Below the pieces are notes generated by a model, which saw only the letters and a list, made by a program, of their open reading frames with translations, had not been told where the DNA came from and did not search any database. Made by a program: the position numbers and the translations under genes. A stretch of DNA of 64,000 nucleotides, from assembly GCF_000315625.1 (NCBI RefSeq), contig NW_005434664.1, positions 229,236-293,235 on the forward strand. The letters run 5' to 3'. This document shows positions 23,639-28,784 of this stretch, one piece after another (positions within the stretch are counted from its first letter, which is position 1; each line of letters starts with the position of its first letter). Source of the DNA: Guillardia theta CCMP2712 (lineage: Eukaryota; Protista; Cryptophyta).

Positions 23639-26600
23639 ATGGTCGGGGCGCCCATCGGCTTCGCGCTCCTCGTGCCGCGAGTCTGCGCGGCCTGCAAGCG
23701 GTCAGACCCTCCATGCAGCCTCCAGCCCTTCCAACCGCTCGCAGAAGACGCCATGCTGTGCCAGGACTGCATGCGGAGAAGCGAATTCAGGTGCTGCCCA
23801 CTTGCTGCGTGTTGCTCCACCCCTGTTTGTCCTGGACGAGCATCGACCAGTTCTCCTTCTCCTTCTCCTCCTCCCTCCTCCTCTTCTGATGATCTTGACC
23901 AGGACCATCACCAAGACTCGAGCGATCGAGGAGTACGGAGTCACAGAGGAGGTGCTGGCAAAGCTTCGCTACATGACGAAAAAGAGCAGACAAGGGTACA
24001 TGATGAAGCTCTACCTCGAGAAACAGGTCGCTGAGCACGGGACGAGGAGAGGAGGCGGAAGCGATGTGTGCGTTCAGGCCCGCATCGATGAGATGCTTGC
24101 TCCTCACAAGAAGCAGAAGCTGAGTGAGGGTATTGTGGAGGAGCAGCAGGAGGCGAGGGGACGCGAGGAGGGGAACGAGTTTCCTTCTGCGAGCAATCTT
24201 GCGACGTCCCCTGACATGGTCAGGAAGAAGATGGAGCTACTGTACAGAGGTTCCTCGCATGGCAAGAGGATGCAACAGGCCAGCGACCCTCTTGCGGAGA
24301 CTCTCGCGTGCTGCTTGCCAGAGGAGCTGCTCATACGGACTGACGTGCTCTCCTCTCGGCCCGGCTGGAGCGCAAAGGGGGAGGGAGGAGGCGGAGGGTT
24401 CATCCTGTACGTGATGCAGACGGCGATGAGAATGGAGGAGAATCATGCGCTAGAGGTTGCGACAAGGGTTGCAAACGCGTGCTTGCTTCCTGTCTTCGTC
24501 GTCCTCCCCCTTATCTCCGACGATGTCATTGCAAACGAGCGCCGATGGACATTCATCTTGCAGGGAGTTCCTGAGATACAGGTGCTTGCTAGTTTCTGCT
24601 GGTGCTGGTGCTGGTGCTGGTGCTGGTGCTGGTGCTGGTGCTGGTGCTGGTGCTGGTGCTGGTGCTGGTGCTGGTGCTGATGTCCTTCTTGATGCTTGTT
24701 CTGATGCTCCTACCATTCACGCTCTTCAACTTCTTCTGTTCTTCTGTCATCCCCATCTGCCTCCTTGCAACATCTCGCTCCCCCTTTCCCTGCTCTGCCA
24801 TACCCTGTCTCCCTTGCTCGCTTCCACTGCTTCCTTCCCCTTTCTCTCTCCCTTGCTCAACCCGCCCTCCCCATTTTTTCATCCTCCTCTCCTCTCCTCT
24901 TCCCTCCTCTTCCCTCCTCTTCCCTCCTCTCCCCTCCTCTCCCCTCCTCTCCCCTCCTCTCCCCTCCTCTCCCCTCCTCTCCCCTCCTCTTCCCGCAACC
25001 CCTTCTGGTTCCCTGCTCTTCCTTACTGATCTCTCACCCAGGAGGCTCTTCGGTGCAAACTCGGCATCATGTCCCATGTACTGGTTGACGGCTACAGAGG
25101 TTGCGACGCAATGGCTGATCTGGTGACCTCTCCTACCTCTAGCCTGCCGTGCTGTTGTCGCTCCTGTCAAACATCTTCTACCTCTCCCTCTTCTTCTGCC
25201 TGGAACTGCACCTGTATTTCTTCCTCTTCTTCCTCTTTCTCTCCATCATCTTTGTTGTCCTTTACGCTTCATCTTGCTCTGCTCCTGCTACTTTACAGAT
25301 CTTGCCCATCCATCCGTGTCCATCTCTTATCTCCTCCCCATCCTCTCCCTTCTGTCTCCTAGTCTGCTGACGTCTCTGTCAGATCTCCTTGAGCAAACGT
25401 GCCAGCTGTGTAGTGCAAGAAGACATGCCTGTCCTCCCCTACCGGCGCTGGGCAGATGAACTCGCAGCCCACGCTTCCGTTCTGCTCGTAGACACTGCCT
25501 GCGTCCTTCCCATGAAGGTCAGAGAACAAGAGAGGAGGAGAATCTGCTGGAGAAAGAGGAGTAGGAGGAAGAGGGAAGTGATTTGAAAAGAGAGAGGAAG
25601 GAGGAAAAGTGGAGAAAGTAGGAATGGGTCCTACAGAGCAGGAAAGCAAGTGGAGGGGAGGAAAGCAGGAGCAGGAGCAGGAGCAGGAGCAGGAGCAGGA
25701 GCAGGAGCAGGAGCAGGAGCAGGAGCAGGAGCAGGAGCAGGAGCAGGAGCAGGAGCAGGAGCAGGAGCAGGAGCAGGAGTCATATGGAGCTCTGATCTTG
25801 GGAGCAGGAGGTTGGCAGGGCGTACGCTTCTGCTTCATCCTTCAGGTCAGCCACAGCGAACAGAAGACAAGAGTACATGGGGAGGAGGCTGCAAACTTCA
25901 GCTCCCTCGTGTAAACTGTTCGTCCCGGAAGGCCTTGAGCCCCTGTGCCTCTCCTCCTCCTCCTCCTCCTCCTCCTGGTGGGCTCTAGACATCGTTCGGG
26001 AAAGCAGCCGGGTAGACTTGTCTGTCCCTGCAGTGGAGCACAGCAGAGGGGGAGAGCAGGCTGCGGGGAGTAGGTGGAAGTCCTACCTGCGCTCTGGACT
26101 CACATCATATGCTCGCAGACGTAAGGCAGGAGGAGGGATGGAGGAAGTAGGAGAGAAGGAAGGGGGAGGAGGGAGGAGAGGAGAGGAGAGGAGAGGAGAG
26201 GAAGGGAACGGAGTGGAGGATTGAGCTCTTGGCAGGGAACAATGCTCTTGATCCAGAGGGGGTCAGCAGGATGTCTTGCTTCCTTCACTTTGGCATGCTG
26301 CCCGTCCGCAGGGTTGCGTGTGACGCCAACGACAAGAAAGCCAGCAAGTTCCTGGACGTGAGACAGTAGAACCGTCTCCTCCTTTCGCTCCCTCACACTC
26401 TCCTCCTCCTCCTCCTCCTCCTCCTCCCTCTCCTCCCCCTCTTCCCCTTCTTCCTCCTGCTTGCTCTTGTTGCTCCTTTGTTTGCTTTCCTCCTCTTTGT
26501 CCCTTCGTCCTTGTCCTTGTCCTTGTCCTTGTCCTTGTCCTCATCCTCGTCCTCGTCCTCGTCCTCGTCCTCGTCCTCCTCATCATTTCGTCTCAGGAGC

Positions 26601-28784
26601 TGCTGGTATGGCGGGAGCTCGCCTACTCATTCTGTAAATACTCGAAGGTCCAGGGGTTCTCAGCTCTACCTGAATGGTCGCGCAGGTCGCGATATGATCT
26701 CCTCGTCCTCGTCCTCGTCCTCGTCCTCATCCTCGTCCTCGTCCTCCTATTCTTTCTTTACGATCCTTTATGTCTCTTTTCTTCTATTCTTCTCTCGTTC
26801 TCCCCTCCTCCCCTCGGTCCTACGTGCTCCTCCTCCCTTCTTGTTTACCTCCGCACCACTTCCCTCCTATCGTCTTGGCCGCCTTTTCCTTCCTCCTTAG
26901 GTTCCTTTCAGGACCCTGAAGAAACATGCACACGATGCGCGGGAGCGGGAGGCGACGGAGGAGAAGCTGGAGGAAGGGAGGACAGGAGACGAGTTTTGGG
27001 ACTCCATGCAGCAGATACTGGTAGATTTTCCTTCCTTCGATTTGGCGTTGATCTCTCCCGCTGCTCCCTGCTCCCTGCTCCCTGCTCCCTGCACATGGGT
27101 TTTCCTGTTTTCTCCCCCCCCCCCCCCCCCTCCTCCTCCTCCTGCTCCTGCTCCTTCCCCCTACCTGTTTCTCTTTCCTCCGCCCAACTTGTGATCTTCG
27201 GACTTGTTGCTGCTTCTTGTATCAAAATCTCTTTCTCTTCGCTTACATGTTCAGCAGGTCAAACAAGGAGAACTTCACAACAACTTGCGCATGACATGGG
27301 GGAAGGCGATTCTTGCGTGGGCCAGCGACCCGGAGAGGTGAAAACTCAGAAACTGCTTGTGATCCCCGTCCTCGACCTCGACCTCGACCTCGACCTCGAC
27401 CTCGACCTCGACCTCATCCTTGTCTTGTTTCACTTTGTCTTTACATATGCTCGTCTCAATTGCTCCGGTTTTCTTCTAACCTGCTTCAGGGCTGTGGACA
27501 TAGCGCAACGTCTCAATGACAAGTATGCTCTCGACGGAGCCGATCCATGCAGGTACCAACTTCTCCTCTCCTCTCATTCTTCTCCTCTCGTTTCCTCCTC
27601 TCATTTTCTTTTCGCCGTGACTCTTATTTCCTCCTCTCCTTTCTCCTTCTACTCCATTCGTCGTTTTCTTCTCTCTTGCTTGCAAGCATCTTACTTACTG
27701 TCAGCGTGTCTGGTGTGCTCTGGTGTGCTGGATTGTTCGATGGGCCCAAAACACCCGAGCGTAAGGTCATGGGCACAGTACGTCTGCGGTAAACTCCTCC
27801 CTCCTCCCTCCTCCCTNNNNNNNNNNNNNNNNNNNNNNNNNNNNNNNNNNNNNNNNNNNNNNNNNNNNNNNNNNNNNNNNNNNNNNNNNNNNNNNNNNNN
27901 NNNNNNNNNNNNNNNNNNNNNNNNNNNNNNNNNNNNNNNNNNNNNNNNNNNNNNNNNNNNNNNNNNNNNNNNNNNNNNNNNNNNNNNNNNNNNNNNNNNN
28001 NNNNNNNNNNNNNNNNNNNNNNNNNNNNNNNNNNNNNNNNNNNNNNNNNNNNNNNNNNNNNNNNNNNNNNNNNNNNNNNNNNNNNNNNNNNNNNNNNNNN
28101 NNNNNNNNNNNNNNNNNNNNNNNNNNNNNNNNNNNNNNNNNNNNNNNNNNNNNNNNNNNNNNNNNNNNNNNNNNNNNNNNNNNNNNNNNNNNNNNNNNNN
28201 NNNNNNNNNNNNNNNNNNNNNNNNNNNNNNNNNNNNNNNNNNNNNNNNNNNNNNNNNNNNNNNNNNNNNNNNNNNNNNNNNNNNNNNNNNNNNNNNNNNN
28301 NNNNNNNNNNNNNNNNNNNNNNNNNNNNNNNNNNNNNNNNNNNNNNNNNNNNNNNNNNNNNNNNNNNNNNNNNNNNNNNNNNNNNNNNNNNNNNNNNNNN
28401 NNNNNNNNNNNNNNNNNNNNNNNNNNNNNNNNNNNNNNNNNNNNNNNNNNNNNNNNNNNNNNNNNNNNNNNNNNNNNNNNNNNNNNNNNNNNNNNNNNNN
28501 NNNNNNNNNNNNNNNNNNNNNNNNNNNNNNNNNNNNNNNNNNNNNNNNNNNNNNNNNNNNNNNNNNNNNNNNNNNNNNNNNNNNNNNNNNNNNNNNTCCT
28601 GCTCCTGCTCCCTGCTCCCTGCTCCCTGCTCCCTGCTCCCTGCTCCTGCTCCTGCTCCTGCTCCTGCTCCTGCTCCTGCTCCTGCTCCTGCTCCTGCTCC
28701 TCTCACTCGTCCGGCAGCCCTACGGCTGTTCACGCTCGCCGTGTGGACGCCAAGGCGCTCAGGAGGGTCTACGGGCTGCCCTGA
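23639..28784 (+). CDS. XPA-like zinc-finger/DNA-binding domain fused to a class II CPD photolyase-like domain (multi-exon)
   Basis: XPA-like part: CAAC-x21-CQDC, intron 23791-23902, then TITKTRAIEEY...MKLYLEKQV. Photolyase-like part: ILYVMQTAMRMEENHALE, NERRWTFILQG, VDTACVLPM, GVSRMSCFLHFG, ELLVWRELA, TGDEFWDSMQ, LHNNLRMTWGK, LNDKYALDGADP, GVLWCAGLFD. The last exon 28718-28784 (PTAVHARRVD...) lies beyond the gap. Confidence 0.85.
24598..24678 (+). repeat. (GCTGGT)n intronic microsatellite
   Basis: Directly visible perfect hexamer run. Confidence 0.95.
25664..25779 (+). repeat. (GAGCAG)n intronic microsatellite
   Basis: Directly visible. The complementary (CTGCTC)n occurs at 28597-28700. Confidence 0.95.
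27817..28596. other. Assembly gap (N)
   Basis: Run of n inside the last photolyase intron. Confidence 1.

Follow-up and report, generated by a model that had tools for sequence, protein, structure and literature searches.

The 64,000-nucleotide stretch of Guillardia theta CCMP2712 DNA analysed here (contig NW_005434664.1, positions 229,236 to 293,235; the whole stretch is called the window) carries at 23639-28784, on the plus strand, a single gene whose predicted 657-residue product joins an N-terminal module of the XPA/Rad14 type to a class II-like photolyase. Photoreactivation and nucleotide excision repair (NER) are regarded as separate routes for ultraviolet (UV) damage, and to our knowledge the XPA DNA-binding core is seldom found outside XPA. 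The XPA-photolyase fusion is natural, transcribed and conserved across several algal lineages. We consider it probable, at roughly 70%, that this chimera of an XPA-type core, a flexible linker and a class II-like photolyase acts in photorepair with the aid of the tethered module.

An earlier note on this DNA, made by inspection of the sequence, had placed a C4 zinc finger, the ITKT and MKLYL motifs and the photolyase N-terminus together in one open reading frame (ORF) at 23802..24680 (+). The last three do share that frame (ITKTRAIEEYG, MKLYLEKQV and the photolyase start FILYVMQTAMRMEENHALEVA); the zinc finger does not, and lies in an exon of its own at 23639-23790 that is spliced on in frame. 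Exon mapping, for which relatives of the product served as guides, yields 12 exons and 11 introns, all of the latter GT-AG, with consistent phases throughout, no internal stops and a terminal TGA at 28782-28784. The motif LHNNLRMTWGK falls in exon 9, GLFD in exon 11 and HARRVD in exon 12, and the locus as a whole is an intron-rich eukaryotic nuclear gene of this cryptophyte. Exon 2 encodes the module (residues 51 to about 100), then a linker (about 100-216), and finally residues 217-277, with which the photolyase alpha/beta domain begins. The linker, some 120 residues in length, is mostly predicted to be disordered and bears a conserved basic KKQK patch.

An exhaustive representative search with exon 2 recovered P0002, a 529-residue protein from a public transcriptome assembly (labelled 'type:complete') whose residues 1-405, corresponding to exons 1-5, match the model exactly. 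The zinc-finger exon, the exon shared by the XPA_C and photolyase parts, and exons 3-5 are therefore joined at the RNA level, and the fusion that the note had proposed is carried by one transcript, with both parts in one complete ORF. Residues 406-529 of P0002 are 100% identical to another Guillardia locus (G000:C74:412592-412954; L011), with the join at a serine-encoding (TCC)n microsatellite; P0002 is a chimeric transcript assembly past the serine run, and RNA support for the gene consequently ends at residue 405. As the sole public product that we found for the gene, P0002 lacks the flavin adenine dinucleotide (FAD) domain, and the 12-exon model corrects the resulting picture of the locus. 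Sampled words of 23400-27816 were present in presumed-RNA runs at a fraction of 0.44, close to the exon share of about 0.43 counted from the model for this stretch, an agreement that is no more than suggestive.

The N-terminal module and its distribution

Exon 2 matched two Pfam families, DNA_photolyase and XPA_C, the latter at 23.5 bits (E 5e-5), just short of the family cut-off of 25 bits. A six-frame search of the Guillardia assembly (87.1 Mb, 669 contigs) scored the same module at 25.6 bits, and the relative P0005 reached 40.5 bits with the same family. Pfam XPA_N was not detected in the Guillardia fusion. Profile and structure comparisons uphold the note's assignment of the ITKT and MKLYL motifs to XPA/Rad14. 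A profile built from eight N-terminal modules matched human XPA (1XPA) with E 4.8e-12 and yeast Rad14 with E 6e-9, the alignment to XPA covering its residues from about 134 to 218; P0005 alone matched Rad14 with E 1.7e-8, in an alignment that begins within the zinc finger, at its second CxxC. In an AlphaFold2 model of the module, residues 50-100 have a predicted local distance difference test score of about 80-85. When this model was searched against the PDB with Foldseek, the top 12 matches were all XPA or Rad14, and XPA recurred at ranks 14-15; the template-modelling scores are low, as disorder affects most of the 135 modelled residues. A feature search of the ESM Atlas with residues 1-300 of P0002 gave no usable match.

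The module follows the order seen in human XPA and yeast Rad14 (1XPA, 6LAE, 5A39), namely a C4 finger (putative in the fusion), then an alpha/beta subdomain with ITKT..EY and MKLYL..Q, then a basic helix. In the profile alignment its K55 and K86 occupy the positions of XPA K141 (in ITK) and K179 (in MK-LYL), two lysines that we take to act in DNA binding, and both are kept. The zinc finger (C16-x2-C19-x21-C41-x2-C44), with its four cysteines adjacent to the XPA_C part on its N-terminal side, is a less secure assignment than the rest of the module; model confidence there is low. Unlike XPA and Rad14, the fusion has the DNA-binding core only, has 21 rather than 17 residues between the halves of the finger, and carries an attached enzyme. 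The protein begins 15 residues before the finger, its core runs directly into the linker and photolyase, and both the N-terminal ERCC1- and RPA32-binding and the C-terminal TFIIH-binding regions of XPA are absent. These comparisons identify the module as an XPA-type DNA-binding core, roughly equivalent to XPA residues 100-218, and not as an XPA orthologue. A comparable case is the N-terminal domain of SLC30A9 (2ENK), in which an XPA alpha/beta subdomain likewise sits in a protein outside NER and which was matched both by the module profile (E 7e-5) and by Foldseek; unlike the Guillardia protein, it is a zinc-transporter fusion with no zinc finger and no link to UV repair.

Two other resemblances in this region were rejected. 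The module segment EEVLAKLRYMTKKSRQGYMMKLYLEKQ (23946-24026), considered as a class II C-terminal tail (KIRYM..KLYIEK), scored 2.8 bits in the PDB and E 0.19 locally and was judged a chance match. The GGGF just upstream of the photolyase domain, considered as the ERCC1 motif of XPA, is not kept in Hanusia.

A local hidden Markov model of the module was used to find it ahead of photolyase domains in database proteins. It precedes a photolyase in P0002, P0001, P0005/P0090, P0025, P0087, P0093 (of the cluster of P0006), P0085 and the Cymbomonas tetramitiformis protein P0007, and an RGSS.GK linker motif is common to relatives of the fusion. The Hanusia phi protein P0001 is 67% identical across the whole of exon 2, with frame-preserving indels and a module that is about 89% identical by our own count. 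The contig that encodes P0087 is eukaryotic and 3.1 Mb long; precomputed Pfam annotation places XPA_C and DNA_photolyase on one product there, with more of the photolyase following downstream. The annotated Cymbomonas protein leaves out the exon that contains the RLTKTAAMASYALTDK part. The zinc finger is present in Guillardia and in P0005/P0090, and none was seen in the green-algal-type relatives P0025 (which has an in-frame stop upstream), P0087 and Cymbomonas. The chimera put forward in the note is accordingly borne out by the P0002 transcript, by conservation in other algae and by the XPA/Rad14 profile and structural matches.

At the Vitrella locus encoding P0128 a linker with KKKQK is present, and a check for an upstream XPA exon found none. 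The first residues of annotated P0128 (MQTAVRGHENPALD) already belong to the photolyase domain, and the open frame runs upstream through the KKKQK linker to a likely earlier methionine (L012, Vitrella brassicaformis CDMY01000821.1, about 3650-4130); the 5' end of the gene therefore seems to be missing from the model.

The six-frame search found only two XPA_C matches in the Guillardia genome, the fusion gene and a canonical XPA. The latter lies on the minus strand at about 39856-39948 of another contig (G000:C71; L001), scores 38 bits with XPA_C and shows VCRAC..YK, LITKTAAKEEYLLQDADFARLGYITRKNP and NDMKLYLRAQL across introns. A canonical class II photolyase with MHGFMRMYW, DGRDPNG and FGKIRYMNY is encoded at G000:C29:343622-344523 (L003/L006/L008), and G000:C70:228971-230227 (L004/L007) holds a third class II-like gene, which is more divergent. 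Judged by these matches, the fusion gene is neither the organism's XPA nor its sole class II photolyase.

The class II-like photolyase part

The best PDB matches of exon 2 were the class II photolyases 2XRY and 8OET (E about 7e-5), and P0128 of Vitrella, a member of the same clade, matched 3UMV with E 4e-44, class I structures reaching merely about 1e-3. Residues are given in Methanosarcina mazei numbering, taken from 2XRY chain positions with an offset of 18 and checked on W360, W381, W388, M379, W305 and E301 and on the list in PMC9649867. All ten class II residues compared are kept in the fusion: N403 and D404, associated with FAD; W381, W360 and W388 of the tryptophan chain; and W305, M379, W421, E301 and R256 of the lesion pocket. 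The Cys of 'DPCS', considered as a replacement for the flavin-N5 Asn, was rejected as such, since N403 corresponds on 2XRY to the 'LND' Asn, and this residue is conserved.

The fusion shares with the class II cyclobutane pyrimidine dimer (CPD) photolyases of M. mazei (2XRY) and rice (3UMV) these ten residues and its best solved-structure matches, and differs from them in bearing an N-terminal XPA-like domain, in reading LHNNLRMTW where class II has MHG[YF]MRMYW, and in reading DGADPCS where class II has DGRDPNG. Y345 of class II is likewise not kept in the Guillardia protein. By word search, its nearest relatives are Vitrella P0128 and bacterial photolyase-oxidoreductase proteins of about 800 residues. 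In a quick maximum-likelihood tree, which held neither characterised class II enzymes nor PhrSph98 and in which the Guillardia branch is long, Guillardia and Vitrella form a pair (SH-aLRT support 97) within an LHNN group (93), and the MHN.MRMYW group is separate (99). A scan of contigs for photolyase relatives returned mostly Acidobacteria relatives of the first sequence in the alignment, and no Sphingomonas or Methanosarcina. Together these comparisons support a complete photolyase part, with alpha/beta and FAD domains, that is class II-like and belongs to a separate 'LHNN-RMTW' clade; the divergent class II subgroup suspected from the motifs is thereby sustained, with class II structures nearest, ten residues kept and the LHNN clade apart in the tree. 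LHNN-RMTW would constitute an uncharacterised class II-like photolyase clade present in both bacteria and algae.

The bacterial members share 34-44% identity with the photolyase part of the fusion as well as LHNN[VIL]RMTW and LN.[RK]YALDG. They differ from the Guillardia protein in lacking an XPA module and in carrying a different partner at the opposite, C-terminal end. In P0102 the photolyase part takes up residues 1 to about 465, which places the oxidoreductase domain C-terminally. Proteins of this build, an LHNN-RMTW photolyase followed by an amine-oxidase-like FAD-dependent oxidoreductase, are P0102-P0132 and P0136-P0143 (about 760-900 residues; Myxococcota, Planctomycetota, Gemmatimonas and Limimonas), and they are annotated merely as 'FAD-dependent oxidoreductase' or 'PhrII'.

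The PhrSph98-type 'bifunctional CPD/(6-4)' photolyases are reported to be sister to class II (PMC9649867). Like the fusion, PhrSph98 has Asn at the M. mazei G375 position (its N384) and conserves N403 and D404; unlike the fusion, it keeps Tyr at the Y380 position (its Y389) (PMC9649867). Judged by motif only, PhrSph98 would fit with the MHN.MRMYW group and not with LHNN-RMTW.

Gene structure and neighbouring sequence

Positions of the exons, of the two introns that bear on the model and of the intron repeats are collected in Table 1. Intron 11 contains an assembly gap (27817-28596). Exon 11 ends in ..GTVRL plus two bases (phase 2); exon 12 completes the codon and goes on with PTAVHARRVDAK. Because the resulting junction, ..GTVRL-R-PTAVHARRVD.., aligns without gaps to the bacterial P0102 (GTVRARPLREHARRLD) and to Vitrella P0128 (GRVRGRPTSIHNAKL), the gap appears to be intronic, with no residue missing, the frame continuous and no coding sequence lost.

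Table 1. Features of the fusion gene, in window positions; residue equivalences refer to Methanosarcina mazei photolyase.
Feature	Position	Strand	Observation
Exon 1	23639..23790	+	Start codon and C4 zinc finger (C16, C19, C41, C44) at the XPA-type position; N-terminus of P0002 identical
Intron 1	23791..23902	+	GT-AG, 112 nt, phase 2; splice confirmed by P0002 (..RRSEFRTITKT..)
Exon 2	23903..24581	+	XPA_C-type alpha/beta module, linker and start of photolyase alpha/beta domain; Pfam, genome search, P0001 and profile match
Exon 3	25042..25122	+	Photolyase alpha/beta domain; identical in P0002
Exon 4	25383..25517	+	Photolyase alpha/beta domain; identical in P0002
Exon 5	25808..26120	+	Interdomain linker and start of FAD domain; (TCC)n serine run; start set from P0002 EVGRAYASASSFRSATANRRQEY
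Exon 6	26236..26357	+	R454 = R256
Exon 7	26597..26685	+	E495, W499 = E301, W305
Exon 8	26912..27020	+	W553 = W360
Exon 9	27258..27337	+	LHNNLRMTWGKAILAW; M572, W574, W581 = M379, W381, W388
Exon 10	27490..27552	+	RLNDKYALDG; N596, D597 = N403, D404
Exon 11	27705..27788	+	GVLWCAGLFDGPK..GTVRL; W614 = W421
Intron 11	27789..28717	+	GT-AG; holds the assembly gap
Exon 12	28718..28784	+	PTAVHARRVDAKALRRVYGLP and stop codon
Intron microsatellites	24597-24678, 24880-24990, 25664-25779, 26500-26580, 27365-27415, 28597-28700		Hexa- and heptanucleotide repeats

Hexa- and heptanucleotide microsatellites, such as (GCTGGT)n, (CCTCTCC)n, (GGAGCA)n and (GTCCTC)n, fill nearly all introns of the gene, and microsatellite repeats flank the assembly gap. 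These repeats are the probable cause of the gap as well as of the chimeric transcript.

Directly downstream, on the minus strand at 29108-31921, is an uninterrupted ORF of 937 residues, acidic and repetitive, in which an OTU-protease-like C-terminal motif (GHCLFSAISDQL) and a zinc-finger-like cysteine cluster were noticed by eye. On the upstream side, a 182-residue ORF with several hydrophobic stretches occupies 22880-23428 (-), about 210 bp from the photolyase start codon; it and the fusion gene are divergently oriented over a short shared upstream region.

Two further photolyase-like proteins of unusual build came to light. P0003/P0096, of 4593 residues and from a Porphyridium aerugineum transcriptome, has eight to nine tandem photolyase N-terminal alpha/beta domains (Pfam DNA_photolyase E 1.5e-91), and P0004, a metagenomic protein of 1898 residues, has three (E 8e-30). 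A motif scan of these proteins for FAD-domain motifs found none. We know of no described poly-'photolyase-N' protein like them.

Proposed function and alternative readings

If the protein acts as its parts suggest, the photolyase part would bind FAD, be photoreduced through the class II tryptophan chain and split pyrimidine dimers with light. The flexibly tethered XPA-like module would bind bent or distorted duplex, or junctions of single- and double-stranded DNA, as XPA does via K141 and K179, and might thereby raise the local concentration of the enzyme at helix-distorting UV lesions. For the basic patch, a role in nuclear import is possible.

Several observations weigh against this proposal of module-assisted photorepair. 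First, the XPA_C score of the Guillardia module is borderline, lying just below the cut-off for the exon and just above it in the six-frame search. Second, the finger has no Pfam XPA_N match, departs from the XPA spacing and is modelled with low confidence, and its absence from P0025, P0087 and Cymbomonas implies that it is dispensable for the role of the module there. Third, the clade departs from canonical class II at G375/Y376 (NN), at Y380 (T) and in the DPNG loop (DPCS), so that the substrate may be CPD, (6-4) or neither. Finally, RNA support stops at residue 405, and exons 6-12, like the junction across the gap, are assigned by homology alone.

The best-placed alternative, which we regard as unlikely but deserving of weight, is that the fusion acts as a light-independent damage sensor, an excision-repair adaptor or a cryptochrome-like signaller, its photolyase fold recognising UV lesions and its XPA-like finger and core recruiting RPA70 or other repair factors, or competing with XPA, instead of merely anchoring the enzyme on DNA. 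The zinc-finger region of XPA contacts RPA70, photolyases can stimulate dark excision repair in E. coli and yeast, and, with a canonical class II photolyase and a canonical XPA encoded elsewhere in the genome, a paralogue could hold a derived role; the divergence of the clade near its active site (HNN, T380, the DPCS loop) would also suit such a role. All ten of the checked residues for FAD, photoreduction and lesion binding are kept, however, which argues for retained catalysis; moreover, the module lacks the ERCC1 and RPA32 motifs and the TFIIH-binding region of XPA, and several relatives do without the zinc finger.

Far less probable is the presence of two genes or transcripts, one for a small XPA-like protein and one for a stand-alone photolyase begun at an internal methionine such as M147 or M153. 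The long, low-complexity linker with its in-frame Met codons would permit such an arrangement, but exon 2 has no stop between the XPA_C and photolyase parts, P0002 covers both in one complete ORF, the linker frame is kept in Hanusia and in distant relatives that share RGSS.GK, and the single called product with both Pfam domains (P0087) comes from an unrelated contig. A chance resemblance to XPA, an artefact of assembly or annotation, or pseudogene status, to which the borderline Guillardia-only Pfam score, the gap within the gene and the downstream chimerism of the public transcript might point, is largely refuted by the family-profile matches to XPA (E 5e-12) and Rad14 (6e-9), by the dominance of XPA/Rad14 among structural matches, and by 12 intact, in-phase, stop-free exons with catalytic residues kept and a gap that homology places in an intron.

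Our literature search for an XPA-photolyase fusion found no description of one, although its coverage was incomplete and domain databases may list the architecture without comment. As far as that search shows, the accessory domain is new for a photolyase, and the class II-like clade that carries it has no name. More tentatively, conserved algal 'XPA-photolyases' may couple an NER-type recognition of kinks and distortions to photoreversal, within an LHNN-RMTW clade that would repeatedly have gained accessory domains, an XPA core in algae and an FAD oxidoreductase in bacteria. The fusion offers a testable case for a second sensor of DNA distortion that aids the lesion search of a photolyase. If such coupling holds true, the module could shift the substrate range, for example toward strongly distorting (6-4) or junction lesions, and a dark hand-over of lesions to excision repair would make the protein the first natural hybrid of both UV-repair pathways.

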